This document shows, piece by piece, positions 3,292 through 47,400 of a stretch of DNA of 64,000 nucleotides. Every line of letters begins with the position of its first letter. Positions within the stretch are counted from its first letter, which is position 1. The stretch covers positions 23,126,001 through 23,190,000 of the forward strand of contig OZ249441.1 in the NCBI GenBank assembly GCA_965235115.1, written 5' to 3'. Position numbers and translations under genes: made by a program. The notes beneath the pieces were generated by a model. It was not told where the DNA came from, searched no databases, and worked only from the letters and a program-made list of their open reading frames with translations. This DNA is from Laetmonice hystrix. Its lineage: Eukaryota.

Positions 3292-4726
3292 TATGTGCCT
3301 AATAAAGCAGATATTTTTTTTCAAATTCTTCTATATGCTCCTGCTCAAATACGTACAAGGCAAATCTTTCTGAATATAACTCGAGGCAAATATAATCAGA
3401 AACTTGAAAGACCTTTTTAGCGCCTAAATGTGGGCCCATAGTAATCTTTGACATTTGCCGCTTGCACTGGAGGTTGTGGGTGGCCGAGGGAGAGACAGAT
3501 AGATAGATGGCTCACTCAGTTCCCCACTTAAGGAGAGTTCCGCCCACTTTGGGTGGGGGGTTAGTCAGTGGGCGCGTGATGCTGGCCAGGCCTGAGGCTA
3601 TTACTCTCTTGGATCAACAGGCTGCCTGTGTGCCCATCAGCTGTGTGGTGTTGGGGGTGGGGAGGTGGGTGGCAGCTCTCTTCAGTCCTGCCAGCAGTAG
3701 GCTCAGTCCCAGATCCTTATATTACCTGGGCTTAACCACATCTTTCAAGTCAAACTGACACTCCCCACACACTGCCATCAGCAACTACCCACACTATCAC
3801 CTGTTGTAGAAATCCAGGCATGCAGTCAAGGCTGAAAAATCGGTTATTCAGCGTGGGGAGAAGTTGTTAAAAATGAAATCTCTTAAATAGATACAGCTTG
3901 CAACCTTGGCATAACTGAGAAGGATTATCCTGGGAAACGTAATTAACTTTAATTTGGTGATACCTCCTGGACACTAAAATCAAGATTCAGAAAACCTCTA
4001 CAAACTTCCTGTTGGGTTACAGTAGGAGTGATTTTTTTAAAAGCCAAAGGGGCATAATTTTATCAATTTCAAGATGCAATATTGTCAAATCTTGTTGAGG
4101 TGTAACTTATCACTAAAATGTTTTAATAAAGTTTTTGTCAAATTAAGTAAACTATTGACAGGTATAGATATTTATAAAAGTATACAAAAGTATGCAAAAA
4201 GGCAGGCAAATAAAAAGCCCGGGGATTTTATCAATTCATTCATAACAGCTTTTCCACTGGCAGAGCTAATGGTTGTGCAGTCTAATATCTTACCCCTCGC
4301 ATGGATGGTTGAATTGTAGGCCTACAAAGAAAACACCCTGGTGACACACTGCCTGGAGGAGTATGACATTTCAACAATCCATCAACTCCTCAACAGGTTG
4401 TCATGTTTTATGCACGTCAATCTGTCAAGAGCTAAACCGAGTCAGTCAAATCCCTCTCAGTATTTATAGGAGCTGTTTACAACATTTCAATCCATCACTA
4501 GAGTTGGCACCGTTACAAGTGTATACTCAGCTATCAGGAATGAAAACATAGGGACGCCCTATCCCGTTACGATAACAACACCCCGAGAGAACTGCTGACA
4601 CAACCAACTCACCTTACCAGTGTCATATGAAGCCACAACAACGAGGCGGAACTAGCGCGCCCTGCCTATCTCTGACACATCATACTATGATAACTATCAT
4701 ACTATAGCAACAATCTGCAAACTTCA

Positions 4727-5230
<504 letters not shown>

Positions 5231-6295: not shown

Positions 6296-6336
6296 TGAGC
6301 ATGCGCACTTCAGAGCGCACTTTCCAAAATGGCTGC
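6296..6336 (+). promoter_or_regulatory. Housekeeping-type promoter of the plus-strand gene (NRF1-like and YY1 motifs)
   Basis: TGAGCATGCGCA 6296-6307 (one mismatch to the NRF1 palindrome) and CAAAATGGCTGC 6325-6336 (YY1), just upstream of a Kozak ATG exon; no TATA box seen. Confidence 0.5.
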
Positions 6337-6394
6337 GATCTGCTGGGACTTCCCGAGGTGCTAAATTTACACAAACAAATTACACTGTTGCGCC

Positions 6395-6475
6395 ATGAAC
6401 AAGAGTAAACAGAAATCGAAGAAGTCTGATAAAGGGCAGAGTCAGAAAGATGAGAATCGTGCTACAGAAACGAAG
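6395..6475 (+). CDS. Supt3h: Putative first coding exon of Supt3h (MNKSKQKSKKSDKGQSQKDENRATETK)
   Basis: GCCATG Kozak start, 27 open codons and a strong phase-0 donor AAG|GTAAGG. It splices in frame to the acceptor at 9760. No homology evidence for this peptide itself. Confidence 0.6.
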
Positions 6476-9400
6476 GTAAGGGGCTAGGGAGGCGCGGCAG
6501 CAGTGCGAGACAATGGGAGTCGGGTATTATCGCCCACGTAGTGACGTACAACACACGTACGACAGACGCTGATGTCTCGGTCGTGATGGTTTGACATTCG
6601 GCGTTAGAAACGAGAGACCGAGCGATACTGCGGGTCATACTGCGTGGGTGTTTAGCTTGACCTTGTTCTTGACACCTTGAACGAGGGTGTTAGCACATGC
6701 TGCCTTTAGTACTGTCACTGGTGGATCCAGGGTTGGGGGTGGGGAACCCCCTGGAAGACAGCCATCGAGTCCGATTGGCGACTAGTCTAGTCGAGGCCGA
6801 GGGTCGGACCGGGGCCGTACGGTTGCCCCCCCCCCCCCCGCCCCCCCCGCAACCTTCCCCCCGCCCCCCCCCCCCCCTAAAATGTTCCTGAGTCCGCCCA
6901 TGAGAAGACACGTGCTCAGCTGTGATGGGCTTATGTGTCGTTGGGGTTACACTTAGGTGGGATGGCGTAATTCTAATCCTTCCCAGTCCATATACTGAGT
7001 GAGCAGCATTAGTACCGCTAACATAGTTGTTTAATGACGGAGCAGTGATGTCCTTGATCAATGACAATGAACAGAGTACCCCAGACCCAGTAGTCCCCCT
7101 TTGTCTTGAACATAAAACAAATCAATAAAGTGAATGTTAAACACATCTTAAATTGCATGGGGCGTAAAAGCCCAACTAGCATAGATGTAGACATGCTGAT
7201 GGATGTTACAATATAGTTATAATGTATAAAAGTGTTTTATTACAAACTTGTGCCAGCCCAATGCCTTGCTGCAGTTAAGCTGTTTGTATTTAGTTGTATA
7301 TTTTTCATCCTTTAACTTTGGAATCTAGCAAACATGTTGTATAATGTGAAGATTTATAAATAAGCAAAGGTCTGAAAATTGCATTTATCCTCAGCTATGT
7401 GTTGACTGTTGTGCCATTGGCACCCACACCCACAACTGATCATTACGTTACCGTTACACTATTCATTCAAGAAAGTGCCTTAATAATATTGATGTAGGCT
7501 GATTCTAAGGACAGTTTGACCATTCCAACTTTATCTTACCAACTGAATGTCACTTAATGTGAAACTGTAGTGTATAGGTTCGACCTCCCTCCTTATAATC
7601 CTATAAGTCAAGACCCAGCTATATCTAATGGTTGAGATGAGCTGATATCAATACAGATTTAGGCATAACATATAGTAAGATGAAGGATCACTCACTGTGA
7701 CAAGGTTGTTGTGGCGACCACATGGCTGGAGCAAGCACCATGGCTGACCGGCTTATGGCAAGAACTCCACCTACTCCCCAGACTTGTGGCCTGTACTGGT
7801 GTCAGTTGGGTGCAGCCGCACCTGATATGAACCTCATTGGGCCACGTGGTCAAACCATGTGACACTGAATCATACACGGACTTCCCTCCGGTACCAGTAA
7901 ATAACATTTCCCGGGGCAGCCTATGTGTACTAAACCCTGTTGTCTGTCGAGGGTGTTACAAGTACTGTACCCTGGATCGACCATGGTTACCTCTGTCATA
8001 TTTTGTGGTGTGATATCTTTGACAGTGCGACAACTATTTTGGCATCAGATTCATTCTGTGTTTACATAGATTATTCGTACTCGGTAAAAGATGTTTATAA
8101 ATATCTGAATGTAACATTGTATCTATAAGTTTGCTTCTAGCAGAAAGAAACAAAGATTGTTATTATTTCAAGTGTTGGCTGTTTTATCTTATCTTAGAAT
8201 GTCTCATCATGAAGTTGATCTAAGTATATTGTTATGGAGTACTTTCTCCTGATGAGAGTGTGAAAAAGAAAAGTTTCCTTAACATCTTTCAGCTTTTATA
8301 AATCGGTGGCATTAAGTATTGGCATACATATTCGTGTAGAATTAAGTGATTTCTTTAAAGATATCTAGATAACGCCCTGGAGATATTAAAGACAATCTAC
8401 AAGTATATGTAACTTCCAAAATTAGACAGCCACCACATCTTGATTTCTTTTCCTGCCTTTTTCTTTCTTTCAGGATTTGATTTTTGAGTTGTCTATCGCC
8501 AACTCTTGAAGTGCTTTGGTTTAGTGATTGAAGGTATTGTGGTGCATTTTGTTTGTATTTATTTTGAATGTCGTGACACAGGTGCACCTGTATGACCCAA
8601 GCTTTACATGTGATATATATACATGCCCCCCCCCTCCCCACCCGTTGCCTCAGTAGACTAAAGTATATTTAGTTTAAAGCAAGAGGAACTTATAGTGCTC
8701 AGCACTTTTTCACAATGAGATATGCTTACCTCGCAGTCCCATTGAAACAAATGTATATAGAGTACATGTGTACACGTGTCATTTAAGAAGTTTGGTCACA
8801 TGATCACAGTGGTTGAAGTGTGTGGCTTCCTCGGTTTTCTTGACTCAATGCATTATGTCATTGTGTTCAGCAAGCCTTCGTCATTATCTTGAGAAATCAA
8901 TTTGAAAATCATATCCTCACAGTAATGATATTATTGTCATTCCCGCCTCACAAACCTCCTTTACTGCCCCACTAATGTTTTACTGTGTAATGCTTGAACG
9001 ATTTTGACCTGATTGGTGTAGTACAAGGTAAATTTGTTTAACAGTGTGTAACGCCTCATGTACACCTGGTGCGTGCACATCAAGGTTACCATCCGTAGTA
9101 GATATGTGATTTGTAATGTCTTCCATGACGTCACACACTTTAGTACTGACTGACTGTGACATGTGTATGTCCGGCCCCTGTCCACCTGCCGAGTGCTTGG
9201 TGCTTTACTCTAGTGCGGCCACTGCCGGCTGCAGGGAGAACGACTATTAGTTCCCGGGCTAGCCGCGAGGTGGCGTCCTTGTATTGCAGTCCGTGTGGTT
9301 GCTGGCGCTCCTTCCCCAAGAGAGAGTGATAGGGGTTCGTCAATGCATGGGTTAGGTAGGGGTGGTTAGGTTCCAGACACGGTTGTGGTTATTTTGGGGA

Positions 9401-9760: not shown

Positions 9761-9939
9761 ATGAACTCGGCGGTGGCCACCGAAAGCCCCACGGTGACCG
9801 GCACGACTCAGGCCCCCGCCCCAGTCCCCGCCCCGACTCCCGGCGGACCCCCGCCGCCGTCCACCCTGGGAGCTTCACCGCCCACCGCCTCCAGACCCTC
9901 GCCGGCCGCCTGGTTCACCACCGAGATCCAGCAGATGAT
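9761..9939 (+). CDS. Supt3h: Supt3h (Spt3, SAGA histone-fold subunit) N-terminal coding exon
   Basis: Acceptor TGTTGTTTAG|ATG. The peptide ends WFTTEIQQM-M, matching human SUPT3H SFATELQSMM, with a phase-2 donor ATG AT|GTGAGT at the position I recall for human. It lies opposite Runx, consistent with the known Runx-Supt3h linkage. Confidence 0.8.
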
Positions 9940-11891
9940 GTGAGTGTCTTTACTCCTATAGCTGGTAATTGGTTAATATAGAAATTAAAAACTTATTTTT
10001 AAGCAGCTCCGCGCTGTGCAGTGTAGACCAGTGAAAGCCTACAGATGACAACAGCTAACCCGTGATCATGTATGCACTATATTGAAAACAACTGTCTGAA
10101 TGAATTGCCAAACGGTCAACTTTTTACTTAGTAGCATGAACAGGTTATGCGGCCCAGTCAGTATTTTGACGGATCTCAGAAAGAGCTTGCCTTATTTTTA
10201 TTGGCAAGGGGCGAGGTCCCTGGGACAATATTCCTGTTCCCGATATCTTGATCTACAAAACACAGGATCAGAACACGTGAAATTTAATTTCCTATCAGTT
10301 TTTTTTCCAACGAAGGAGACTGACTGGTTTGATTTGATTTTGTTGTTAGGAGACTCAAAACGAACGCAGGTCAATATGTAGATGAACTGTGTTTACTCGG
10401 TGACAAATGTTCATCTATAGTTTGTGGGAAAAATCTCATTTTTGTGTTTAAAATAAAGAGTAATTTGTTTATTACAGCCAGGTGTAGAATTAATTCTGAT
10501 GTAGATGTTTTAAATATAAATCTCTGTGAAAGGTTTTAGCTGCACGTTTTCATGTTGTACATGTTGGGTTTGCTTTACAGACATTTCTTCATATCTTGCT
10601 TGCTTTTCTTTATACTTGACCCACAATTTGTATTTATACTGTGACAAAAGTTTATTTCAGATACATGTATGTTAATTACTTCGCCGAACATTTTTATCCC
10701 GCAGTTTTTATCATTTTGTTATTATAATATGGTTACGTATACATGGATCAAACATTTCCCTCTTTGCCTTGTCTAATAATGAATATCAGGTGTCAGCTGA
10801 TCGATTTAAATTAGAATTTAGAAGCGAAGTAAAACTCCACCTTGTTTTTCTGCCTGCGTGATGACTGTCCCATCCAACAAAGAACGTTTATTAAAGGTTT
10901 TATGAACGTTATAGTGTCTGACTAAGACGTTTTGATGACGTTATCTGTGAGCCGTGGCGCGGCAGGAACAGTTGGTTGTAACCGTTACCTCTGGTATTTG
11001 GCCTCAGTATGCGGGGTTACGGCTTGAAATTCTCCATCTCTCATTCACATCACTAGTCAACCTGCTCATCAATTAGCCAGGCAGGCTTTTATGAATACAT
11101 AACTGGCCCTTGCATGTTGATTCAGTTGTTGACACCCTGGCCCCTGCTCCCGGGGTGAAACAGCAAACAACAGCCGCTGTGATTATCCATTTGATGATGG
11201 CGACCTCTCGCGTGTCGATTACGGCTCGTGACGGCCGGCCCAGCGTGACAGGCGCAATATGGACTCATTATCAACAGATTTTGATGAATTCATGAGGGGA
11301 AACTGCAGAGGTGCTCGTCGGTTGTAAGGGAGCAGGGAGGGAGCGGGGGGGGATCCGTTATGGCGCAGGAAGTTGAGAAATGGCTACGGAACTAAGTCAT
11401 GTTGCTAGCCATTGTCCATTGTCTCCGCACATGAAACGGGAAACCATTTACTGATTTTTATATCTCATTCACCAGTGCAAATGGGTTCTTGGTAATCTCT
11501 TCTGAACACTTCCAGGCTATTTAATTCATCAATGAAAACCTTGAAAAAGAGTTGTTTGATTCATTATGAAAAAAGAAGTTGCGAGATGTTCAGCTTTCTA
11601 TAGTTATCATTGAAGAGTAAGAGTGGGAAAAAGTGGAGGGTTGAGGGTTGTATGACACAAAAGATGAAAGTGCTCTATGGAGGGGGCTCATTATGACGGG
11701 GCTGGGAAAACTTCAAGATGTGCTGCATGGGCTGGCACTGTCACGGTCCGAGCAATTAAAAGGGGTGCTAATAGGAAGAGGGTAAAAACTGAAGTGGCCT
11801 ACCTGAGAGGCCTGGCGGGGGGGGGGGGGGGGTAGCTGGTGGGTGGGGTGGGGGTTGGGGTGATGCAGGGGTAACTGTAAGGTCGGGGGCG

Positions 11892-12878
11892 ATGCCCTTT
11901 GTCTTGCCCAGAGTCCTACGCCCACGCACTCTCGAATTATTGTTGAACCAGCAGAAGGAGCGGGGCACACTTTTTTGGAACGAGATGTCCAGCCAGAGAC
12001 CAAATAAGCGTGGAGTTGACCAACTGAAAACTGGTCTCTCTCCACCATTGCAACGTACCCGAAGCGAAGGCTCGTTGGCACCGGTTAGCTCTGAAGGGGA
12101 TCCAGAGGTGACTATTACTGATTTAGACACCTTATCGGTCGCAGCCTATGGCCCTCCCCCACCTACCACAGTTCGGTGTGTAGCCCAGCCGGCTACCAGC
12201 GCCGAGGTTGCGGCACTTCGGGAACTAATGGTCGAGATGAACAGAAATATGGAGAGGCGCCTTTCTCATTTGGAAAAAGGGATGAAGACTTATGTTAATG
12301 AAATCCTGGACGAAAAGCTGGAGGATATAAGAAGGTACGTAGATACGGAGGTTGGATTAGTGCATGAGAAGATCGACGAACTGGAACGGCGGGTCACCCA
12401 GGTGCAGTCACTACATGAGTTCGATCAAGAGGTCACGGTCGTGGCCATCGGCGTGGCAGCGGATCGCAATGAAACCCCACGACAAGTCGCACAGGATCTA
12501 GTGAGTAATGACCTAGGTTTGTCCCAAACCCAAGTTGTTCGTGCCCTCCGAATGAAGACAAGGGACCCCACGAAACCTGGCCTGTTGAAGATAGAGCTGA
12601 AGTCAAGGGAGGACAAAATTAAGGTGCTTCGTGCCAAGGTAAATTTGAAGAATAGACGCCCAACAGTGTTTCTCCGGTCATCCCAAACATATGCAGAGAG
12701 GTTGCTGAGATCGAATCTGGAGACTGTCCTTAAAGAGTTGCCAAACGGAGACAAATATACGGTGTTAGGAAGCGGAAAGATCGTGGTTAGGGAAGAGCGG
12801 AGATCAGAACGTCGAATAGCGCCGAACATCTCAACAAGTCCAAGGCAAGCGGGTACCTCCAGAACTGATCATGCTTGA
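11892..12878 (+). CDS. LINE ORF1 protein (coiled coil plus L1/Tnp22-type RRM-like region)
   Basis: Heptad-rich segment (LRELMVEMNRNMERRL...IDELERRVTQV) followed by VVAIGV...VRALRM...KPGLLKIELKSREDKIKVLRAK...QTYAER. The true start may be the ATG at 11892 or 11985. Confidence 0.85.
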   Translation: MPFVLPRVLRPRTLELLLNQQKERGTLFWNEMSSQRPNKRGVDQLKTGLSPPLQRTRSEGSLAPVSSEGDPEVTITDLDTLSVAAYGPPPPTTVRCVAQPATSAEVAALRELMVEMNRNMERRLSHLEKGMKTYVNEILDEKLEDIRRYVDTEVGLVHEKIDELERRVTQVQSLHEFDQEVTVVAIGVAADRNETPRQVAQDLVSNDLGLSQTQVVRALRMKTRDPTKPGLLKIELKSREDKIKVLRAKVNLKNRRPTVFLRSSQTYAERLLRSNLETVLKELPNGDKYTVLGSGKIVVREERRSERRIAPNISTSPRQAGTSRTDHA

Positions 12879-12938
12879 AATGGAACGGACGCTATTAATC
12901 GTAGCAATCCAGGGTATCTGAAGGAAAAACTATCCCTA

Positions 12939-15900
12939 TTGGCTGTTAATGTCTGTGGCCTTAGGTGTAAACTGGACAACCATATTTTTTCACAGTACGT
13001 GCGTGATTTCGACATCTTGTCCCTGACCGAAACTAAGACAAATAACTACACAACGTCTGATATACCGGGATATACCCCAAAGTTCCAGTCCTGTGCAAAT
13101 AATTACCCCCTGAAAGGTGTGCATGGAATGGTTACATATGTAGTGGATTCTATTGCAGCAAGCGTTAAAGTTATTGAGGGGACGGTCTCTGATCTGGTCC
13201 TTTGGTTGAGCTTTGAGAAGAGTATTCTTGGATATGAATTAATCCTGGGCACGATATATCTCCCACACGAAGGGTCGAGATACTATAGTGATTCTGTATA
13301 TGATGAAATAGCTGATGATGTAATATATATAAATGCCCGTTTTGTTGACCCGCGTGTAATTATTATCGGTGACTATAATGCCCGAACTGGGTGTCTCTGT
13401 GATTTTGTTGATCTGACTGATATCTTAGATGAGCGTACAGGTTTGGATATTAATGACGAAATGTTATTTATGTCGCACTATTCTATGGCAGACAAAGGTT
13501 TTGAAACCAGACGCTTCAATGAAGATAAGGTGGTAAACAACAACGGTAAACGACTCTTGGAATTCTGTAAGAGTATCGATGTACATATTGTTAACGGGAG
13601 GGTGGGCAAAGACCGGGGCATAGGAAAGCTAACCTGTAAAAATGTAAGCACGATAGATTATGCTGTTGCGTCACCAAATTGTTTTGAGGTTATAGAGGAC
13701 CTTGAAGTCGATGTGTTTGACAGATTTCTCTCTGATGTGCATAGCCCTTTGTGTGTGAAGCTCACCCAGTTAGTAACCGCTGATGATGATAATGATGTCT
13801 GTGATTCGGCTAGACCGCCAGTACAAGTTACAGACGAGACTAGCTTAATAAGATGGGACCAGACCGTGGCGGTGGCCTTCGTTCAGGCATTTGATCACGA
13901 CAAGATAACTCGCTTGGGTAACAATATCCTCAGTAGCTCAAATGAGTCGGTCACTCAGTCTGATATAGACACCTATGCGCAGCAGTTGCGGGACATTCTA
14001 ATCCAACCCGCCAAAGTATGTGGGCTGGAAAAAACAATTGTAAGAAAAGGCGCTTCCAAAAAGACACGACTGGTTAAGCCATGGTTTGACAAAGCATGTG
14101 GAAAGGCCCGCTCTGAATATTTTAGGATAAAAAGAAGGCTGAAATGTAAGAGGTCAACCGAACTAGAAGTGGAGTTACGTATAAAATCGAAGGGCTATAA
14201 AAAATTAATTCGTAAGACGGCAAAGAAGTATTACAAAACACTTAACAAAGAATTAAAAAACCTACGTTCTAAGAACCCAAAGAAATTCTGGGATATCCTT
14301 AAAAAAGAAAGTAGTGATGTTAATCCAGTAAATAATGTCCCGCTGGAAGCCTTCTTTGAGCACTTCAAAGTGGCGAACAGTGCTGAAAGTGTTGAACATG
14401 GTGCGGATCAGGAATCTGGCCGCCTACCAGCGGGAGATATGGAAAATGATGACATAAATACGTTGTTTACCACAGCTGAGGTTGTGGACCAGGTGAAAAA
14501 GGCTAAGAAAGGGAAATCTCCAGGATGTGATCAAATCCTAAATGAACTGTTGAAATATGCTCCTCCGTCTCTGATTACTGTAATTACTGCCCTCTTTAAC
14601 ATTATTCTACAGACCGGTAAGGTACCGTCCTCCTGGTGTGACGGAATATTAATACCGATTTATAAAAAGAAAGGAAGTCCGGAGAACCCTGAAAACTTTA
14701 GGGGCATAACCCTCCTTAGCTGCTTGGGAAAGATATTCACTGCTTGTATAAATAATCGGTTGTACAGATACCTAGACTCTGCCGGGATCATTGGCGAAGA
14801 ACAGGTTGGTTTTCGGCCAGGTTATGCGACAGTCGACCACATTTTTGCACTGAATACGCTTATCAACATGTACCTGAGTCGTGGGAAAAGGTTATATTGT
14901 TGCTTCATCGATTACAAATGTGCTTTTGACTCAATCCAGCGCATCTCATTATGGTTAAAGCTACTTAATCAGGGTGTGAATGGGAGGATACTACGGGTGA
15001 TTATGAATATTTATGAACAAGCCAAATCTTGTGTTAGGAAGAATGGGGAACTATCCGATTACTTCCCTTGCAAAAGGGGGGTAAGGCAGGGAGAGAATCT
15101 GTCGCCATTGTTGTTTGCGATGTACCTAAATGATCTTGAATCATATGTTAGTCAATATTATAAGGGTATCAAGGTTAGCGCTGGGGATGGTGTGCGTAAT
15201 TCCTATACTGATGATCGTGAATTATTCTTGAAACTTTTCGTACTGTTATACGCAGATGATACGATTATTATGGCGGAATCCGCAGATGAATTACAAAAGG
15301 CAATTAATGCTGTTGCAGAGTACTGTGATACCTGGAATTTGTCAGTTAACACCAATAAGACAAAAATTGTAATTTTCTCTAGAGGTAAGGTAAGAGTCTA
15401 TCCGGAATTTCGCCTAAAAGACGTTAGCATTGATGTCGTAAGTAGCTATAATTACTTGGGTGTATTATTCAATTATAATGGCCGTTTTCTTAGGGCTATA
15501 TCAAAACAGGTATCGCAGGCGCAACGCGCTCTATTTTACTTACTGACCAAGGCTGTTAACTTACGCTTGTCGATTGATACCGTCATCCATTTGTTTGACA
15601 CTTTGGTTAAACCAATACTATTATATGGCTGTGAAGTGTGGGGTGCTGAAAAATACGAACAGGTAGAGGTCTTCTACCGCCGATTTTGTAAGAAATTATT
15701 GAAACTTAATAAGTCCACCCCGAACTGTATGGTGTACGGGGAATTGGGAATGCCCAATATGGCAGTTACTATCAAACAGAGAATGGCATTGTTCTGGGGG
15801 AAAATTATTCATGGTAAACAGACTAAAATTACATGGCTCCTCTATAAGATTACCAGGGGTATGTCCGACACGGGTGCTATCAGGTCGAACTGGCTCGATG

Positions 15901-16427
15901 CTATTGAAGCTATTTTAAATGAGTGTGGGCTCCCGAATGTCTGGCGTGCTGAAACATTCCCGAATTATGAGTGGTTGAAGCTAACGTTATCCCTCAGGTT
16001 GAACGATATTTTTAAGCAAAAATGGCATGAGGAAGTTACCGAAAGCGGTTCCTGTACCAGTTACAGAATCTTTAAACAAAGCCTAAATATGGAACCTTAC
16101 CTAACGCTGCTGGATCCCGGCCCGAGAACCTACCTCACTAAGTTTAGGTGTGGAAACGTTAAGCTCCCGGTTATAACCGGTAGATATGAAGGCATACTGA
16201 GGCATCAGCGAGTGTGTAATTTATGTACAGCCAATGTAGTTGGGGATGAATTCCATTACCTATTTGAGTGTACGTATTTTAATGATACCAGGAAGTCCCA
16301 AATTAAACCCTATTACCTTAGACGCCCGAATGTATTGAAAATGGAGCAGTTATTTACAATGAGCAGCAGAAAATGGTTGTTACATCTGGCTGAGTTCGTA
16401 AAAAGAATTATGACTATGTTCAACTAA
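12939..16427 (+). CDS. LINE ORF2: AP endonuclease, reverse transcriptase and C-terminal CCHC motif
   Basis: EN motifs AVNVCGL, LTETK, GDYNAR, TIDYAV, SDVHSPL. RT motifs FRGITLLSCLGKIF, QVGFRPG, FIDYKCAFD, GVRQGENLSPLLF, LYADD, YLG. C-terminal CNLC..GDEFHYLFEC. 1162 codons without a stop. Confidence 0.97.
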   Translation: MAVNVCGLRCKLDNHIFSQYVRDFDILSLTETKTNNYTTSDIPGYTPKFQSCANNYPLKGVHGMVTYVVDSIAASVKVIEGTVSDLVLWLSFEKSILGYELILGTIYLPHEGSRYYSDSVYDEIADDVIYINARFVDPRVIIIGDYNARTGCLCDFVDLTDILDERTGLDINDEMLFMSHYSMADKGFETRRFNEDKVVNNNGKRLLEFCKSIDVHIVNGRVGKDRGIGKLTCKNVSTIDYAVASPNCFEVIEDLEVDVFDRFLSDVHSPLCVKLTQLVTADDDNDVCDSARPPVQVTDETSLIRWDQTVAVAFVQAFDHDKITRLGNNILSSSNESVTQSDIDTYAQQLRDILIQPAKVCGLEKTIVRKGASKKTRLVKPWFDKACGKARSEYFRIKRRLKCKRSTELEVELRIKSKGYKKLIRKTAKKYYKTLNKELKNLRSKNPKKFWDILKKESSDVNPVNNVPLEAFFEHFKVANSAESVEHGADQESGRLPAGDMENDDINTLFTTAEVVDQVKKAKKGKSPGCDQILNELLKYAPPSLITVITALFNIILQTGKVPSSWCDGILIPIYKKKGSPENPENFRGITLLSCLGKIFTACINNRLYRYLDSAGIIGEEQVGFRPGYATVDHIFALNTLINMYLSRGKRLYCCFIDYKCAFDSIQRISLWLKLLNQGVNGRILRVIMNIYEQAKSCVRKNGELSDYFPCKRGVRQGENLSPLLFAMYLNDLESYVSQYYKGIKVSAGDGVRNSYTDDRELFLKLFVLLYADDTIIMAESADELQKAINAVAEYCDTWNLSVNTNKTKIVIFSRGKVRVYPEFRLKDVSIDVVSSYNYLGVLFNYNGRFLRAISKQVSQAQRALFYLLTKAVNLRLSIDTVIHLFDTLVKPILLYGCEVWGAEKYEQVEVFYRRFCKKLLKLNKSTPNCMVYGELGMPNMAVTIKQRMALFWGKIIHGKQTKITWLLYKITRGMSDTGAIRSNWLDAIEAILNECGLPNVWRAETFPNYEWLKLTLSLRLNDIFKQKWHEEVTESGSCTSYRIFKQSLNMEPYLTLLDPGPRTYLTKFRCGNVKLPVITGRYEGILRHQRVCNLCTANVVGDEFHYLFECTYFNDTRKSQIKPYYLRRPNVLKMEQLFTMSSRKWLLHLAEFVKRIMTMFN

Positions 16428-17858: not shown

Positions 17859-20800
17859 ACAACTCAGTGCTGACGACCTGGAGGAGCGGCGATGTGGCAT
17901 GGATCGGGCAGGGATGGGACCGGGTAGGGACCGTCTGATAGGGGTGGGGGTGGGGGTTGGGGGTGGGGTTGGGGGTGGGGTTGGGGTGCATGCGGGTCGA
18001 TGTAGAGACATTGTTGATCCGATGCGCCCGGGACAAACTGACAAACATTTACCGTTTCACTTTCAACGTGGTGTTTTGTTTCGTTGTTTTGTTGCCATTG
18101 CTGCATGAGTATTTGAGTTTGTTCAGAATTTGACAATGATAGTGACCCGCAGTTAGAAAGTCATGTGCTCAGATTTCCATGACTTGGACAAACAAGCATG
18201 CAGGCAGAGGACGTGCCAGGCGCGTGCCTTTGTTTGCCGAGCCGCGAGCAACGATCGCTCTCACTGACAGTCACTTAGAAAGAGAAATCCGGACAGAGGA
18301 CATAAGTTTTATGATTTATTTGACTCAGCTGGGAAATTAATCACTGCCTGACAGTTGTCATATTGGTGGCGTTATTTTTCTCCGACTAAATCAATAACCA
18401 TACACGGCAGTCGTTAGAACTCTACTTAGCAATGGTAAAGTTGCAGGTTCTACTTAATTGACTTATTAAGGCTGTATTGAGCCTGTATGTATCACTAAAA
18501 GCATCTCTTTCCGAGCTTCTCGGCTGGTTTTGATCTTCACTTAATGACACATTAAGATTCACATTATAGATGTTTCACAACATATGTGCTCTTTTTTTTA
18601 CTTTGCAAATTTGCTGTTGTTTTTTTGGTGCCTTTAGCGAGCATGCAAAGATACAGTTGTGAGCAGAAGTCTGGGGGTAAAAATGATTGATAGATCAACT
18701 CGGTCGGACGATATGGCGGGTATGATTTCAGATTAGGCTCCCATGATGCCGCATGACGATCCACAAATAATACGTCTCGACACACTGAAACACAGCGCCA
18801 CCTCGTAGAGTTCAAAGGAAGCGCATCTTTATTCGAACGTCACGTCTTGCCTATACAGCCGGGTTGGGCACATGCTTGTGGTGTCATCGCATACAACCAT
18901 TGTATTTAGATGCCGCCATTATGACACTCCGACTTAGAACTTAACAGAAAAAAACAACCCTTCCGTGCCATTGATCTCTCTCTCAAATTTATATTTCTAT
19001 TTTCATCACGTCTCTTTTTTGTCCCTTGCCACCCAAACAAAACGTCACTGAATCCGACACATCAGTACCACTTTGAACCATAGAAAAAAGAGGCGAAAAC
19101 TGGAAAACTCTGTGGAGAATACATCAAACCGGGACAGATTGGTTTTTGCAGGAGGCAGCTTTCAATGGCCAAATCTTGCTGGTTCAAACATTTATATCCT
19201 TCGTAGAAAACAGATCATAAGAAGGGTTCAAACCATGTCTATTAAACCTAGCCATTAGATAGTTTGCAGCGCTGCCACACTTTGAAGTAGCTGAAAAGCA
19301 CAATTACGCCTGATGCTTCGAGGTCGCGTTATCAATTATCAAATGTATAGGGGCCAAAAAAAGCTGTGTTAAAGCAGTGAATAGGAACCTTAGTAGTTTG
19401 ATCCAGGCACTGCGCAGCTTTTTGCTGGGCTGCACTATTTACACATCACATTTACCGAAGTTAAGCCCAGTCAGTGTTGGAAACTGTCTGTTAGTGTTTT
19501 ATGAGGACAATTTTAGAACCTGTCAGATGTCGCCGTAGTAAATCTAGGCCTGAAGATTCCAAGCTGTAACTTTTAAGTTTAGCATCAATGGGATTTAATT
19601 TGTCTGGAGTTCTGTCAGCTGACGGCAATTGCGTAGGCTTGGAGCGAAGAAACGTGATACAGGGTCGTGTTCAAATAGGGTGGGTGAAATGATAAGGTCT
19701 GGCGATGCTGATCAGACAGATGATGATAATCTGATTGTTGGGAGATTATTGAAGCTCTCTTGATTACTCGGTAGACAAATGGCCGCGTGGCGGGGCGGGC
19801 GCGTGTAGCACCGTACGGGGTCTATTCGAGCGGTATTATATCCGCATGGCCACGTCATGGCGGAAGGTGTGCTGTTTCAAAGTCGCCCTCCGAGTCAATG
19901 AGTGTCAACGAATGAAACAGATAAGTTCATCCTCAGGGCCCCCCCCCCCCCCCGCCCTCCCCTCGGAGGTGAGCCCCGGACACCGCTTTGATTTGCATGT
20001 TTCGGGCCCCGCGTCAGTGACTGTGAAATTAGCCGCGGTGTTGGTGATGTGCGCGCAGACGGAAGGGGTCAAATCGCAACAAACGAAAAATGTGGCAGTT
20101 GCCACTCAGGGCGAGCTTTACATTTCACCCCTAACCCTTGCAGGTGTTTCCCGACGAACAAGCACCGTTTATTTTTACGAAATGTCAAGCAAACCCCGAC
20201 AGCGTCAATGCTGATCCCTTGCACAATCCGCGCGATTGCTTAATGCCTGAGGGGGTGGGATGTCAAGCGTGTGGGTCAAATTAAACAGATGCGCCCTAAA
20301 CATACGCACGCCGACAGTTTGTTAAATTAATACCATTGTCAGGGCCATTGGAAGGCAATGGCTCATGACAAATGAATTGGCACAGGTGCTTTCAGTCATA
20401 GCTTGACTAGCATAGATTTCATTACAGGCCAAACACAACATGAATAAATAACGCGGCAAATTCCAGTGGAAGTGGCGAGTTGGTGAGGAAGATCTAAATC
20501 AGCCGCGGGTTACACCAGCCGAGGCCGATAGATTGTGACACGGAATAGCAAGTTTTCTGTGTAAACTTGCATGCCCACTGATGTGGCTCCTCTAACAATG
20601 GTCATTATTGGGAGGAATATAAATCAAGGTACACACACGGAAAATGCTTTGGTTGGCAAACACAAAGATGGGACAGACGGAACCAGGTTGTCACCTGCTT
20701 TTCAGTTGCTTTCATTCGAGATTATAGCAGAACAAAGGCGGCTGGTGCCTTGGAAACTTTCCAAGAGTGCCTTTGGATACTACCAGTAGTACTACTCGGC

Positions 20801-21193: not shown

Positions 21194-21400
21194 CTTACGA
21201 TTCACCAGACGATATTTACAATGTGGTGACAGGAGTTTCAGACAGCTTCAGAAATTGGTATGTGCAACGAAAAAAAGGAGACAACTTGCATTTTGATGCG
21301 ACGCCTTGTCTTCCCAACGCCCGCCAAAGAAATGGTTCTTGACGAGATCCGCCGACTGTAAGAAATTCAGGTTTCCAAATATAAATATTGTACCACGACA
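21194..21400 (+). pseudogene. Decayed PIF/Harbinger-like transposase N-terminal fragment
   Basis: Across frameshifts it reads LRF..DDIY...ETTCILMRRLVFPT, resembling the Harbinger motif FRF.K.DIY...EALCILLRRLAYP. Multiple stops and shifts; the DDE core was not seen. Recognised from memory only. Confidence 0.4.
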
Positions 21401-21508
21401 GGAATGGTCAATGAGCATTGGGAGTACAGAATCGAAATCATTGGGAGTGAGCCAGCCTGTTTTGTATCTCATCCCTTTCAGGGTTAACACTGATTCTTTT
21501 ATATATTA

Positions 21509-21724
21509 TGCGGTTTATTATTCCTTGATGTAAAGGTTCTAGCGGTGATTTTTGCTACAAAATAGTATACACCTGACCACATAGAATTTGGCGACGCTGC
21601 CGACTCATTCAGTGCCGTATTCCGGAGTCTGTGGTTCTGTAAATGACGTTTTCACATACAGCTGCGGTAAGTAACGCAGGAAAATTGGCACCGACCGCAT
21701 TGTTTAAGGTGCTGCTTTGTGGTT
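21509..21724. promoter_or_regulatory. Homotypic cluster of six Runx sites (candidate autoregulatory enhancer)
   Basis: TGCGGTT 21509, GACCACA 21575, TGTGGTT 21630, TGCGGT 21663, GACCGCA 21693, TGTGGTT 21718. Confidence 0.55.
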
Positions 21725-24700
21725 GGCAGAGGCTAGTGGATTACAATGAGGGGCAACCGCCTTACACTGGCACGGTCATAGACACAGATACATCGCCCCG
21801 ATTTAATGGAAACTCTCCCCGCCTTGTGACCGTCATAAAGGAAGTATTTTCAAATTGTCTTTTCATCACGGCAAGACAATGTCGAATCACATGCAGCTGA
21901 GCTGGAATTATTCTGCAGACTTCTTTTTCAGATCTGGTCGTCTAAAGGTAACGACAAAGGCGAATTGTTTTGTTGCATGACCTGGGTTATCTTGGCGACC
22001 GGTCGCCTGCTCCCCGCTCTATGTGTGATGGCGATGGAGCATTGTGACCCAGCACTCATCGCGGAGACGGTGGCGAAAATGTACGTGACGAGTCATCACA
22101 CCAACGGTGAATGACCGTGAACAACGTCGGCAAATAGCAAGTTCAGCGCACGTCAGCCATCCGGGCTAAGCCGAATAGATTTATAGCGGATGATTTTTAC
22201 AGCTACTCTAGGTAATTTATCAGGAGGAATTATTTGAACTGGAAACAGAAGGAATGTGATCAGAGGGCAGCAGGGCAGTCGGGGTATATAGAGGGTGCGC
22301 CCCCGCCTGGGCGCCCACTCTCCGGGTGCATGACGTGTTGGATCATCGGTCGTATATAGTCCTCACACAGGCTGAGCGTGTCTGCCTGCCCTGCACCCAC
22401 CAACATAATCAATCAAAGTCTTGGATCCAGGGTTAAACTTTATATTCATTGGAAACGCTGCCTTCTCATCAACAACCAGCTCCGTTAAGTGGACCAAGTT
22501 TTTTTTTTGGTTCTCATTGGAATTCATGCTGGCCACGAACAAGTACGTACCGCCGGGGTGCCATGCCGCCGGTATAAGAGACGTGCGTGATAAACTGATG
22601 CCAAGAGAAGAGATTCCCATTGGATCACATAATCGAATAAACTCCGTGTATGTCCCCCGGTGCGGCGATGACCACCGACAAAGCAAAGCCAGTTTACTTA
22701 CCAAGCAGTGGGTGATGCCGCATTGCCCCGTCTTAGAAGTGGTTTGCGTTTTTCGTTGGTGGAGTCTGCGGCCACGTTTGAGGCAATGTCTTATCAAATA
22801 TCTTCCCTGCTCGGTTAGTACGTACGCCGCTCAGCAGTGCTTGTGGCCAGATTTTGTCAGGGCGCGGTTTTTGAGGGTTTCTGGTTGCCTAGGTAGCGGG
22901 GTCTGCGGACGCACATTAGGAGGCTCTGTGGTCCAGCCCCCCGTCTGTCTGACGGTCGGGAGGGGGGAGGGTACCGATTTTTTTTGCCCATCGGTTGTGC
23001 AGGGCAGGATGCAAGACAAAAGGGGGTGGGGGGGGGGGAGGCGCCCAGTCTTGGAGGTTTCTGGATTGCGGGGGCTGAGATTCGAAACTGGCATTGACTC
23101 GACCACGTGGAGCGGGGGGCGGGCGCCATAAATGGGAAGCCCATTGTGCCTGGCCCAGCCCATTTCCCTGCGTATTGTTTTGGGAGTCAGTGAAATTGCT
23201 GTGTGATTTTTCGTTTATTCTTGCAAGCATATGCGTCGGGCCTAATATTCATGAGTACGTGGGCGGAGGGGGAGGGGTCCAGGCGGGCGGCCAGCGCGAG
23301 GGGGTGGATCCCCGCCCGTGCTCGCCACGCCTAAAACAATAGCATACCATCTGCTAGCATTTGATCGGACTTGACAGGAGTCCAAGCCCTAATGGTGGAC
23401 GTTTGCTCGAGCCATGCCTGAGCCCCGCCCACCCCAGCATGCAGCAGTGCGCAGTGCCCCCCCCCCCCGGGAGGAGCAAGGCCCGGAGCGCGCATGCCCC
23501 ACCGATCGATGGGAGCAGGCAGGCAGCGTGCCCAACGGGGCATGGTAATTATGTTTGTGTACAGGCATCAGATAATTAGCGAGTCGTCAGCACCTGCAGT
23601 GGGACAGCAGGTAAACAATGGCGGGGAGTAGTAGTAGGCAGAGGCGCTGCTGCTGCTGCTGCTTCTGCTTCTGCTACAGGCGCCAGTCGCCCGTTCTGTG
23701 CGAGACCCAGCCCCTCACTTCAGCTGGCCTCCAGAGTTGCCCTGATACAAGGGGTTCCAACTTTTGCTCCACCAAGACCCCCGGGCCGCATGCTTGTTCC
23801 CCCACTCGCCCACTCGCATGTCGATTGCACAATGGCGCGAAGCTCGGGCACGTGTCGTGAAATTAGAGCCATGGCGACTTTGGCATCTCAGTGGCACTTG
23901 TTCGCATTGCAGAGGCCAAATTAGTCCCGACACACGAGGCCACTTGCAGTAGTGTGCCACCATTGTCAGCCCGATCACGAAAACCAATAGATTTTTATGG
24001 GCTAGCACTCGGGCTGGTTTCATTGCCACTTGCAGCAGCAGAACCGTGGGCCTGATGCCATCCCAGGACAAAAAATAGTAATCGTACATCGAATAACCCG
24101 CAGCATCCAGGTAGCACGTCGGCCGTTCGGCCTTAAGCTCGCAATTCATGGTCCTTTACCCTATAATACCCTTACAAATGTCGCAAATCCTGTTGTCAGT
24201 GAGCGTGTCAATTGGACTTCTATAGGTAGGGCGGTGTAAGTGGTCGGCGGGAGCCGGTTAGGTAGTGTCCTCCTACTTCTCACCCCGCGGGGCGGGCCTG
24301 TCACAAACCCTGGGCGGGCGACCGTTTGATGTCCATTCACCCCCCCCCCCGATCATCACCGAAATGATCATTATGGCGTGGATGGCCAAGCATGTGTCCT
24401 GTTACGTATGTAACACTGACCTGGCGCTCGGTCAGCCCTCCTTGACCGGCCCTGTTGTGAACCCCCAGCTTTGATCGCTCCACCCCACCGTTGTGCTCGC
24501 AATCAGGGCTCCCCGTTCACAGGGCTTACCGTCCCTCACACAGTCCCTCCTGTCCCTCACACAGTCCCGCAGCATGGAGGACACAACAAACACCTCACAG
24601 CCCGGTCTGACGATATCAAAGCGCCGACCTGTGGGCTGAGTTCGCTCAGGTGTACCGTGTTTCCTCAGGTGAACCCCCAAAGAGCACCTGGCTGGCATGA

Positions 24701-26945: not shown

Positions 26946-27655
26946 GAGGTCTGTTTGCACACGTTAAACTGTTGTGTAAGTAGTTAAGAGGTCTGTTTGT
27001 GCGAAGATAGACTGGCGCGTAAGTAGTTAAGAGGTCTGTTTGCACAAAGTTAAACTGCTGTAAGTAGTAAAGATTTAGAGGTCTGCTTGCACAAAGTTAA
27101 ACCGCTGTGTAAGTAGTTAAGACTTAGAGGTCTGTTTGCACAAGTTAAACTGTTGTGTAAGTAGTTGAAAGGTCTGTTTGCACAAAGTTAAACTGCTGTA
27201 TAAGTAGTTAGGGGGTCTGTTTGCACAAAGCTAAACTGCAGTGTAAGTAGTCAGGTATATTTGCACAAAGTTAAACTCCTGTGTAAGTAGTTAAGAGGTC
27301 TGTTTGCACAAAGTTAAACTGCTGTATAAGTAATTGATATTTAGAGGTCTGTTTGCACAAAGTTAAACTGCTGTGTAAGTAGTCAGGAGGTCAGTTTGCA
27401 CAAAGTTTAACTGCTGTGTAAGTAGTTAAGAGGTCTGTTTGCACAAAGTTAAACTGCTGTATAAGTACGTTTAATTGATATTTAGAGGTCTGTTTGCACA
27501 AAGTTAAACCGCTGTGTAAGTAGTCAGGAGGTCTGTTTGCACAAAGTTTAACTGCTGTGTAAGTAGTTAAGAGGTCTGTTTGCACAAATTTAATTGCTGT
27601 GTAAGTAGTTAGGATGTCTGTTTGTGCAGAGCTAAACTGTAAAGTAGTTACAGGG
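26946..27655. repeat. Minisatellite with a unit of about 43 bp, 16 copies
   Basis: Consensus GAGGTCTGTTTGCACAAAGTTAAACTGCTGTGTAAGTAGTTAA with indels; an orphan fragment lies near 27725-27742. Confidence 0.95.
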
Positions 27656-33717: not shown

Positions 33718-35781
33718 TCGTCTGAAGTCACACAACCTGTCGTAGTATCGGATAGTATACAACCGTCGTCTGAAGTCACACAACCTGTCGTAGTATCGGA
33801 CAGTATACAACCGTCGACTGAAGTCAAACAACCTGTCGTAGTATCGGACAGTATACAACCGTCGACTGAAGTCACACAAACTGTCGTAGTATCGGATAGT
33901 ATACAACCGTCGTCTGAAGTCACACAACCTGTCGTAGTATCGGACAGTATACAACCATCGTCTGAAGTCACACAACCTGTCGTAGTATCGGACAGTATAC
34001 AACCATCGTCTGAAGTCACACAACCTGTCGTAGTATCGGACAGTATACAACCGTCGACTGAAGTCACACAACCTGTCGTAGTATCGGATAGTATACAACC
34101 GTCGACTGAAGTCACACAACCTGTCGTAGTATCGGACAGTATACAACCGTCGTCTGAAGTCAAACAACCTGTCGTAGTATCGGACAGTATACAACCGTCG
34201 ACTGAAGTCACACAACCTGTCGTAGTATCGGACAGTATACAACCGTCGACTGAAGTCACACAACCTGTCGTAGTATCGGACAGTATACAACCGTCGTCTG
34301 AAGTCAAACAACCTGTCGTAGTATCGGACAGTATACAACCATCGTCTGAAGTCACACAACCTGTCGTAGTATCGGATAGTATACAACCGTCGACTGAAGT
34401 CACACAACCTGTCGTAGTATCGGACAGTATACAACCGTCGACTGAAGTCACACAACCTGTCGTAGTATCGGACAGTATACAACCGTCGACTGAAGTCAAA
34501 CAACCTGTCGTAGTATCGGACAGTATACAACCGTCGACTGAAGTCACACAAACTGTCGTAGTATCGGACAGTATACAACCGTCGACTGAAGTCACACAAC
34601 CTGTCGTAGTATCGGACAGTATACAACCGTCGACTGAAGTCACACAACCTGTCGTAGTATCGGACAGTATACAACCGTCGACTGAAGTCACACAACCTGT
34701 CGTAGTATCGGACAGTATACAACCGTCGACTGAAGTCACACAACCTGTCGTAGTATCGGATAGTATACAACCGTCGACTGAAGTCACACAACCTGTCGTA
34801 GTATCGGACAGTATACAACCGTCGTCTGAAGTCACACAACCTGTCGTAGTATCGGACAGTATACAACCATCGTCTGAAGTCACACAACCTGTCGTAGTAT
34901 CGGACAGTATACAACCATCGTCTGAAGTCACACAACCTGTCGTAGTATCGGACAGTATACAACCGTCGTCTGAAGTCAAACAACCTGTCGTAGTATCGGA
35001 CAGTATACAACCGTCGACTGAAGTCACACAACCTGTCGTAGTATCGGACAGTATACAACCGTCGACTGAAGTCAAACAACCTGTCGTAGTATCGGACAGT
35101 ATACAACCATCGTCTGAAGTCACACAACCTGTCGTAGTATCGGATAGTATACAACCGTCGACTGAAGTCAAACAACCTGTCGTAGTATCGGACAGTATAC
35201 AACCATCGTCTGAAGTCACACAACCTGTCGTAGTATCGGACAGTATACAACCATCGTCTGAAGTCACACAACCTGTCGTAGTATCGGATAGTATACAACC
35301 GTCGACTGAAGTCACACAACCTGTCGTAGTATCGGACAGTATACAACCGTCGTCTGAAGTCAAACAACCTGTCGTAGTATCGGACAGTATACAACCGTCG
35401 ACTGAAGTCACACAACCTGTCGTAGTATCGGACAGTATACAACCGTCGACTGAAGTCAAACAACCTGTCGTAGTATCGGACAGTATACAACCATCGTCTG
35501 AAGTCACACAACCTGTCGTAGTATCGGATAGTATACAACCGTCGACTGAAGTCAAACAACCTGTCGTAGTATCGGACAGTATACAACCATCGTCTGAAGT
35601 CACACAACCTGTCGTAGTATCGGATAGTATACAACCGTCGACTGAAGTCACACAACCTGTCGTAGTATCAGACAGTATACAACCGTCGACTGAAGTCACA
35701 CAACCTGTCGTAGTATCGGACAGTATACAACCGTCGTCTGAAGTCACACAACCTGTCGTAGTATCGGACAGTATACAACCA
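33718..35781. repeat. 48-bp VNTR, 43 near-identical copies
   Basis: Unit TCG(A/T)CTGAAGTCA(C/A)ACAACCTGTCGTAGTATCGGA(C/T)AGTATACAACC(G/A), no indels; three of the six frames stay open. Confidence 0.98.
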
Positions 35782-44440: not shown

Positions 44441-47400
44441 TAGATTTTTAGATGCGCTGGAAGTGTCCATTACAGGGTGAATGAAGATGATAGGAACTAA
44501 AAATGACTTTGTCCACAGTGAAATTTTATTACCAGTGAACTTTCAAATGTCAAATATGTTAGTATGTAGGTGGTTTGGTACAGTGCATTTATAACAGCGG
44601 AACATTTATAACAAAGCACGCAAATTTGCACCCTATAATCTACTACTAGGTCGGGAAATGGTCATTTCAGATGTTGGCCTAGACGTAGTTTCACAGATTT
44701 ATATTTATTATACCAGATATGACTAGCGTTAGAGTTATGAACATACCGGGGCTCTGAAGACGGGCTGCCAGAGTACCATCGAGACAGCTGCAGTGAGCCA
44801 AGGCAAAGAGGAGTCCGTGGTTCTAGGAGCTATGGAAGGTCAAAGAGGTGCCTGGATTGATTCATTAGTACAACTTCCGCGTGGTACAAGGGTTGTATGG
44901 TAAGATCCATACTTTAATTAGGATGATGTGAATTAGCAATATAAACTTTTTGTCTGCTCACGGTGAGTTTATAAGTACGCTTTCAAGACATGCATGGGGA
45001 AACAAGTCATTGTGAATGAAGCTAACGGTCGCCGTCAGCGACATGATGCTGCAGCGCATGTAACCTTGCGGCGACGTCCATGTTGTAAGATTGCATCAGT
45101 GGTGGTTATGTAATGTGACCTGAACCTCCTCGGCAGGATACGGACAGCGGGACAGAGGCGTCTCGGGGGACATGGCGGCCGAGGTAACGGTATATTCGTA
45201 CGTTATGGGAACTAAGTTGTGGCCGATGTCAGGTTTACAACCCTTGGAGGGTCGAGACAACAAGCCAGGTTCTTGTATCAAAATGGCTCCCAGCCAGTGC
45301 TGGCCACGATAGCCGTGATTATATAACCATGATCTTACACCCCGTGTGTCAGCCGAACTGGGAGGGATGGATACGTACGATGGTTGACGGGCGCTCTTGC
45401 TGGTTATATGTTACGTATGTATGTGAGAAGGGATGTATGGGGTGGGATCGGCTGACAGTGGGCGGCTGTCGTGTAAGAGGAGGAGGTGAGGGCGGATCAA
45501 CAAGGTTACGGAGGCTGAGGTTGGGGGAGATGATGAGGATGACTCACCTCTTGCCATCCAATAATCGAGGAATCCGCCAACGATGCAGTGGAGAGCTGGC
45601 CTGGGTGATGTGATGGTGGAGGTGACGGCACAAGGTTGGAGGGTCATCCACCCTGCCGACGGGCTTGGCCAGCCCAGGGCCTTCTGGTCGTCAACGGTAG
45701 CCACCACTGGCGCTTTGGGTCGAGCCCCCAACAACTAACTTCACAGTCCCACACACACGCACCGCACAAAACACCTCTCCCAGCCTGTCTTCAACAGCCA
45801 AGAACCGGACCTGTTTAAACCGTTCCCTTGCTCTTGGAGAATAACAAGAAATCGACCGCAAAGTCCATTTAAAAAAGAGTGTAGATGATATTTAGGCAAA
45901 AGGGAGAAAAGGTGTAAATGTGGTGGTGTCTGGGTGTGCTACTGCTGCTGCTGCTGCTGTTGTTGTTTTGTGGCGCAGCTATTGCTTAGTTGTGGAGCGA
46001 AAGCCGCCTGGTTGATGTTTTCACGGAGACGGTTATTGGTGGATCCTGTGGGCGTGCGGTTCTTGCGGTGGCCTTGTGTGGCAGCGGTGGCTTCTGCAAC
46101 AGCAGTGTCGCCACGCCAGAGACAGCAGAGGGGGCAGGCCTTGTAGATGGCAAAGCCATGCAAGACAAATGGTGGCAAGAGCAGTTGACTCGGGGGAGCA
46201 GTTCCCTCACCTAGAATGGCCAGGTCGGCCTCTTACTTGTCTTATCATTTCTCCCTTGTCACCCTGCTCACGGCCTTCGTTAATTTGAATTTCCTTCTGA
46301 CTAATCAGACTCTTGCCGCGAGGACAGCCGATTGTCGGCTAGATTAGGTGGTGAATGGTAGGCTAGGGCCAGGTAAACTACATACAGGCCTGCCTGAGTA
46401 AAGACTTTATTGTAATCCAGCTATGACAAAATGCATGAAATTTTTGCGGTTACCATAGAGGCGGTCGTCAACTATGTCCCCGTCGCTCGGAAGGCGAGCA
46501 CGTGGCCTGCACCCAGTTCATGTTTAGTCTCCTTATTCAAAGTGACCAATCACATTGCCCAGACCTACATTCGGGTGTAGTAATACATTGGCATGACCGG
46601 AGGTGATGTGGTCAGTGCGAGTATCCACTGAATGGACACGATGGATATAGGGACTTCATGCTTGATTATACCAACAGGCGTCAACTCAGCGTGGGGCGGC
46701 CAAGGCTGAGATACCCGACCAAAAGTGTCTGCCAAAAGCAACAATACAAGCAATACCCTCAAAGAAGGGGACCAGGGAAGAGTAAAAGAACTACCTGTGG
46801 CCCCCCTCGCTTGCTGAAAGTAGCAATACAAATATTTGTGTGTTGTTTAGTATGCACTTCGTTCGTGTTTTGCGGCTCGCTGGGCTGATGGAATGCGACA
46901 GGCTGGGCACGAATATTGAACACTGACCGCAGATAGGCCATTCACCCTCACAACCCGGCACCTGAAGTACATAATTGATAAAGTAATCAGGACTTAGACT
47001 GATAATTCTTGAGGAGAGATTGTCAAAATATGTGCGAGACTCAGCTCACTGACTTACGCATCTTAGCGGAAGAGAAACTCAATAACAGCAGGAAGGAAGA
47101 CTCGCCAATTATATTACTAGAAAGGTTTCTTAGAATAATAATAGGTATTCTTCAAATCGTGCGAGCCTCATGAGCCATCCTCAGACTATTCTAATGAGGT
47201 TATTTGAAGTCAGGAGGCAGGTTTTTTCAGCTATTCCAGCGCAACGTTTTCTCTGAGTGGACTGATTTGGATCAAAAGCTCAAGTTGTAGCTTTCAGTAT
47301 ACCCTTATATCATCTACACTAAAGATATAATCTTTTCCTGAACTCATCCTTTAAGAAATCAGTATCCTCATTCAACATGTCATTGGACAACCAAGGCCAA

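Follow-up and report, generated by a model that had tools for sequence, protein, structure and literature searches.

The Runx gene, its proximal promoter and its internal acceptor

The window, by which we mean the whole stretch of 64,000 nucleotides that was analysed, carries on its minus strand the sole Runx gene of the genome. The nearest protein matches were the Runx proteins of annelids, molluscs and nemerteans, the best of them being contigs from ENA and Logan (93-94% identity) and Capitella teleta (91%). The promoter-proximal part of the gene comprises the following features:

4732-5079, minus strand: Runt-domain exon, common to both transcript types (Pfam Runt, E 1.5e-48)
849-734, minus strand: next Runt exon, to which the transcript of a relative (L002) jumps correctly
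5093-5216, minus strand: proximal (P2-type) promoter and leader, with a TATA box GGTATAAAAG, three sense-oriented Runx cores and an ATG at 5095
5080-5081, minus strand: internal AG acceptor; the exon common to both transcript types begins at 5079

The GGTATAAAAG box of P2 is located at 5216-5207, and the last of the three sense-oriented cores in the leader overlaps the ATG at 5095. This start-codon-overlapping core, AACCACATG, is kept at four annelid loci (L004, L005, L008 and L009), which together with the near form CACCACATG of Haliotis makes five of the six relatives. The exception is Capitella, which has CCCTCCATG, its ATG being without an overlapping Runx site.

The internal acceptor was located with L002, a spliced transcript of a relative found in Logan, which matches the window exon from 5080 downwards and upstream of that point consists of unrelated sequence encoding MPALVGI in place of MHLTP. 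The point at which the 5' ends are swapped is exactly the internal AG at 5081/5080. Comparison of positions 5079-5095 with six loci (L003, L004, L005, L008, L009 and L034) revealed that the acceptor is kept as YAG/AT in six other species, Haliotis and those of five more annelid loci. The final base of the codon preceding the shared Asp is invariably A, while the residue encoded is Pro, Leu, Ser or Thr depending on the species; the constancy of YAG/AT despite a varying residue suggests that it is the splice signal, and not the amino acid, that is under selection. Additionally, the automatic annotation of Haliotis contains Runx isoforms beginning at an internal Met, which implies alternative non-coding 5' exons in a mollusc. 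The Haliotis gene range begins only 842 nt upstream of the start codon, too short a distance for such an exon to be placed.

A conserved, probable distal first exon

Upstream of the proximal promoter, a probable distal first exon of the P1 type could be placed at single-nucleotide resolution, together with a conserved block preceding it:

22702-22723, minus strand: coding end of the predicted P1-type first exon, consisting of an ATG, six further codons (MRHHPLL) and one G
22701-22696, minus strand: P1 donor GTAAGT, directly after the single G, giving a phase-1 intron
22761-22916, minus strand: conserved block upstream of the P1 ATG, 80% identical over 160 nt to L007 17961-18120 (E 8e-34)
22927-22932, plus strand: Runx core at the 5' edge of this block, GGACCACA in the Runx sense, conserved in the relative

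The minus strand from 22723 to 22696 reads ATG CGG CAT CAC CCA CTG CTT G, followed by GTAAGT, with an in-frame TAA four codons upstream of the ATG. The closest relative (the L004/L007 contig, with a Runt exon 94% identical and a chain of conserved blocks syntenic with the window) encodes the same MRHHPLL and uses the same donor GTAAGT, and the two nucleotide differences between the exons are both third-position and synonymous. Three minus-strand candidates of the form ATG...G/GTRAGT with phase 1 are present in the window upstream of P2, and only the one at 22702-22723 is conserved. The single G before its donor is the phase required by the acceptor at 5081/5080; when the two are joined in silico, across an intron 1 of 17.6 kb, the G and the AT of the acceptor side restore the Asp that opens the shared protein sequence DLNG. 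Splicing of the P1 exon to this acceptor would thus rebuild a conserved Asp codon. The initial annotation had predicted a P1-like promoter from the acceptor without locating this exon, and had expected any exon within 21496-21724 to be non-coding.

Altogether, the phase, the donor and the conservation in the relative make it highly probable that 22702-22723 is a P1-type first exon, as predicted from the sequence, and we infer that it is used in this animal. Its position is a more solid product of the analysis than the function of the Runx-site cluster described below. The 160-nt block upstream of the ATG is single-copy and better conserved than the coding exon, and is probably the P1 leader or core promoter. 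No Rfam family matched this block or the interval from 19 to 25 kb, and the CpG observed/expected ratio was flat (0.65-1.0), with no informative CpG island. A tandem pair of Runx sites was not found in 22702-22932, where there is one conserved core only. As a separate observation, the block contains a GATA-type word, TGATAAG, at 22793-22799 on the minus strand, identical in the relative.

The search for the P1 region in a third species gave no match. Two pattern scans of metagenome contigs, with the conserved block and with the P1 coding exon, returned nothing, the 10 kb of flank on the Capitella scaffold L003 contained no match to P1, and the 5' leader of L002 bore no likeness to the P1 block of either the window or L007. 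L009 and L010 shared nothing upstream with the window, and L008 shared only the element at 9.9 kb. L002 also matched Capitella weakly over 21 nt (3381-3401); this match was rejected, being a short repeat with no donor.

A cluster of six Runx sites

The initial annotation had drawn attention to six TGYGGT cores in both orientations, and a motif scan of the window confirmed all six within 215 bp, at 21509-21723. The TATA-like word and the word CAGAACCACAG that it had reported alongside them were both found at their given places on the minus strand, the latter at 21639-21629. The components are as follows:

21509-21514, plus strand: Runx core 1, TGCGGT followed by T
21576-21581, minus strand: Runx core 2, TGTGGT followed by C
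21630-21635, plus strand: Runx core 3, TGTGGT followed by T; part of CAGAACCACAG when read on the minus strand
21663-21668, plus strand: Runx core 4, TGCGGT followed by A
21694-21699, minus strand: Runx core 5, TGCGGT followed by C
21718-21723, plus strand: Runx core 6, TGTGGT followed by T
21496-21506, minus strand: TATA-like word ATATATAAAAG, read from the sequence and probably incidental

The extended Runx consensus has been given as PyGPyGGTPy (PMC7057835). Five of the six cores match TGYGGTY, core 4 being the sole one without a 3' pyrimidine.

Over the whole window there were 74 TGYGGT sites against 76.9 expected from dinucleotide shuffles, and thus no overall excess. Simulating the window 1500 times with an order-2 Markov model never produced six sites in 220 bp, and a Poisson scan gave an analytic P of ~5e-4 per window. 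Since real DNA is lumpier than a Markov chain, a stricter test was run on the real window with tandem repeats masked by TRF, in which the Runx motif, written as ACCRCA, was compared with control motifs of five fixed bases and one two-fold position and of similar abundance (n = 2399). Thirteen of these (0.54%), ACCRCA among them, reached six in 220 bp, so that a fair P for the Runx cluster is ~0.005 and not 5e-4. Several others of the 13 mark one E-box cluster in a Runx intron. A 180-kb sample from other parts of the genome had 0.72 Runx cores per kb, and its sole cluster with at least four cores was a 55-bp tandem repeat; together with the control motifs in the window, this sample only approximates the genome-wide false-positive rate of such clusters. 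The motif-cluster statistic proposed in the initial annotation came out in two parts, with a rare local density (P ~0.005 in the masked window, and no non-repeat cluster of at least four in 180 kb) and a total count at expectation. There is a local excess of sites for the factor encoded at the locus, which is what characterizes a homotypic cluster.

The cluster is real, unique and non-repetitive. No internal repeat unit common to the six sites was found, TRF leaves them unmasked, and a search of the 627-Mb genome with 21350-21850 returned no other copy, the stretch matching itself alone. ORFs overlapping the cluster gave no Pfam match. The contigs of three DNA runs, all from one sample, cover the region without a break (they are genomic and contain no joints of interest), and the six cores are identical in all three. 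The only difference among the runs there is at 21622-21623, outside all six cores. At this position one of the three runs has GT in place of CC, 7 bp from core 3.

Setting and conservation of the cluster

The cluster is situated 16.4 kb upstream of the proximal TATA promoter, and the distance of 16 kb from the Runx promoter given in the initial annotation is correct for this promoter at ~5.2 kb. The conserved in-phase first exon at 22702-22723 places the cluster inside P1 intron 1, 979-1193 bp downstream of the P1 donor in the Runx sense, and not at the P1 promoter or exon. Of the P1-like promoter that had been proposed for the cluster, the existence of a conserved in-phase first exon thus stands and its location does not, since it lies ~1 kb farther upstream; the only conserved in-phase exon is at 22702-22723, and none was found inside 21496-21724, where a distal first exon or start had been suggested. 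Two small elements shared with the relative flank the cluster:

21274-21361, unstranded: small conserved non-coding element on the Runx-proximal side, 69% identical to L007 15167-15254, in syntenic order
21834-21881, unstranded: small conserved non-coding element on the P1 side, 79% identical to L007 16416-16463, holding a palindrome and an Ets-like ACTTCCT

Being bracketed by these two elements, the cluster has a neighbourhood that looks regulatory. The element at 21361-21274 was also considered as an exon and was not called, because it begins with an acceptor-like YTTRCAG but has no donor.

Conservation, which had been proposed as a check on the cluster, was not observed in L007, the one relative that reaches the region, for either the sites or their density: the 1162 bp that separate the two flanking elements in the relative contain one TGYGGT, and no part of them aligns. 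Instead, a CA-rich tract immediately preceding the P1 block of the relative carries three Runx cores, which may reflect turnover of sites, or noise. As one relative reaches the region, turnover and absence of function are not told apart by this comparison. The 650 bp from 21250 to 21900 contain no GATA motif, one or two Ets-like motifs (one of the two sitting in a flanking conserved element) and one Myb motif, numbers that are at or below expectation, so neither the cluster nor its surroundings are co-enriched in GATA, Ets or Myb motifs. With 94 occurrences of TATAWAW in the window, and with DNA of the relative that fails to align at 21496-21506, the TATA-like word at that place is unremarkable.

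Possible roles and origins of the cluster

The reading that we prefer, and hold to be about evenly balanced between right and wrong, is that the cluster is a putative lineage-specific, homotypic Runx/CBF-beta binding module near P1 that feeds back on Runx. The six motifs in P1 intron 1, between the two conserved elements, would constitute a candidate module belonging to the P1-proximal regulatory region, to which the Runx protein would bind and through which it would feed back on its own gene. Both the binding of Runx to the six sites and an action of the module on transcription are what we infer from the motifs and their setting. The presence of other conserved Runx sites at the locus, one overlapping the P2 ATG and one at the edge of the P1 block, counts in favor of the module. 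Against it count the unconserved sites, the lack of co-enriched GATA, Ets and Myb motifs, the low information of the motif and a realistic P of only ~0.005. The distal autoregulatory enhancer suggested in the initial annotation is accordingly plausible as a putative element in respect of its unusual clustering, its single copy and the conserved elements that flank it, and finds no backing in the conservation of its sites.

In our estimate, a substantial minority of the probability belongs to the alternative that a short degenerate hexamer has piled up by chance in intronic DNA, with no regulatory role. It agrees with the window's total site count, which equals expectation, with the ~0.5% of comparable control motifs that also reach six in 220 bp of the same window, with the lack of the sites in the relative's syntenic interval and with the lack of enrichment of partner motifs. 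However, the motif that occurs at this rare density is the very one bound by the protein encoded at the locus, the cluster lies between two conserved elements and 1 kb from a conserved first exon, and the only cluster of at least four sites in the 180-kb background was a tandem repeat.

That the cluster itself is a promoter, in which the TATA-like word at 21506-21496 drives a non-coding first exon spliced to the 5080 acceptor, is improbable given that a conserved coding first exon of the right phase is already available 1 kb upstream. The arrangement is suggestive in that, in the Runx sense, all six sites precede the TATA-like word by 3-220 bp, that the proximal promoter likewise uses a TATAAAAG box, and that the internal-Met isoforms of Haliotis imply non-coding alternative 5' exons in a mollusc. 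Nevertheless, the frequency of TATAWAW in the window and the unaligned DNA of the relative weigh against this promoter, and no conserved donor was evident downstream of the TATA-like word when the sequence was read by eye. The window is rich in tandem repeats and a LINE lies 5 kb away in the same intron, which speaks for the Runx-like words being incidental to a mobile-element or dispersed-repeat fragment. The initial annotation had named a dispersed repeat of equal site density as the finding that would speak against an enhancer; the region is instead single-copy in the 627-Mb genome. With this single copy, and with neither internal repeat structure nor masking by TRF, the repeat-derived reading is already close to refuted and receives the smallest probability of all. 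Readings other than these four are given very little weight.

Comparison with known Runx systems

Autoregulation through Runx sites at P1 is established for vertebrate Runx genes, in which tandem sites at the distal promoters serve auto- and cross-regulation, and the combination of two promoters with such self-regulation has been treated as a vertebrate hallmark (PMC3974841, PMC4236176). The P1 promoters of lamprey have dispersed single Runx sites only (PMC4236176), and lamprey already blurs this picture. In a limited literature search, we found no description of a P1/P2 arrangement in any invertebrate Runx gene.

The locus resembles the P1 of vertebrate Runx1, Runx2 and Runx3 in having Runx consensus sites in the distal regulatory region of the gene itself, in the order of a distal first exon, a large intron and then a proximal promoter, and in the predicted joining of the distal exon, at an Asp codon, to an internal acceptor a few codons past the proximal start. 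In vertebrates, two adjacent sites lie inside the 5' UTR and are conserved from shark to human, whereas the six sites here are dispersed, occur in both orientations, are intronic at ~1 kb past the P1 donor and are unconserved in the relative. The N-terminal peptide of vertebrate P1 products begins MAS(D/N)S. The predicted MRHHPLL has no likeness to it, and the transcript of the second relative encodes MPALVGI.

The Runx1 enhancer eR1 (+23/+24) is likewise compact (270 bp, against ~215 bp here), contains Runx motifs and lies between the distal and proximal promoters (PMC7057835). However, eR1 is deeply conserved, combines Gata, Ets, Myb and Runx motifs and is located mid-intron (PMC7057835), whereas the cluster is Runx-only, unconserved in the relative and close to P1. 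Within the gene itself, the Runx sites of the P2 leader share with the cluster the motif, the locus and presumably the logic of self-regulation; their start-codon site is conserved in annelid loci except Capitella, whereas the cluster is unconserved even in the nearest relative.

For a lophotrochozoan that has one Runx gene, the locus provides exact coordinates at which a vertebrate-type layout can be tested: the conserved distal exon at 22702-22723, its conserved leader block, an acceptor kept across annelids and an abalone, and a dense, lineage-specific cluster 1 kb away. It is tempting, and in our estimate rather doubtful, to see here a single Runx gene with the full vertebrate-style layout, having Runx sites at both promoters and the cluster as a P1-proximal self-regulating switch. 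Should the layout be homologous to that of vertebrates rather than convergent, a dual-promoter, self-regulated Runx architecture would be older than the protostome-deuterostome split. Binding of Runx to the cluster would make it a case of regulatory-site turnover around a conserved promoter; without such binding, it would serve as a warning that even a P of ~0.005 for a locus's own motif can arise by chance.

Other features in and near the window

Apart from the features discussed above, several other observations were made in and near the window. At 1625-1814, in the Runx intron that separates the exon at 4732 from the one at 849, there are five to seven CAGGTG-type E-boxes in ~190 bp, a cluster as extreme as the Runx cluster in the control-motif test and without the look of a tandem repeat when inspected by eye. 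Runx cores are also grouped farther upstream, with five in 309 bp at 45761-46069 and four in 341 bp at 48891-49231, these being 23-26 kb upstream of the P1 exon; the part of the window from 36 to 56 kb has ~1.9 Runx sites per kb, against the 0.72 per kb of the 180-kb sample. In another annelid relative, whose Runt exon is 87% identical, L009 5181-5538 (and L010 5109-5377) has a 358-bp stretch with five Runx cores ~4.5 kb ahead of the Runx exon, at a position that is not homologous and with marginal significance (about 0.05).

Large tandem arrays occupy 33718-35780 (43 copies of a 48-bp unit), 58456-59620 (53 copies of a 22-bp unit) and 26963-27639 (a 43/141-bp array). Such arrays generate extended spurious ORFs in every frame, and naive statistics of motif clusters are dominated by them. 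Non-coding blocks syntenic with L007, at 67-87% identity, were found at 19062-19412, 9891-9945, 6299-6538, 23544-23626 and 23960-23989, and the block at 9891-9945 is also common to L005 and L008. A LINE with an endonuclease and reverse-transcriptase ORF2 lies at 11892-16427 on the plus strand, antisense inside the P1 intron, where it accounts for much of the extra spacing between conserved blocks compared with the relative. Outside the window, at ~95 kb on its scale (G000:C6:23221356-23221454, plus strand), there is a weak TFIID-18kDa match (25.5 bits, E 0.006) in head-to-head orientation with Runx. This match could be an exon of Supt3h, a gene whose linkage with Runx has been described as ancestral (PMC4236176).
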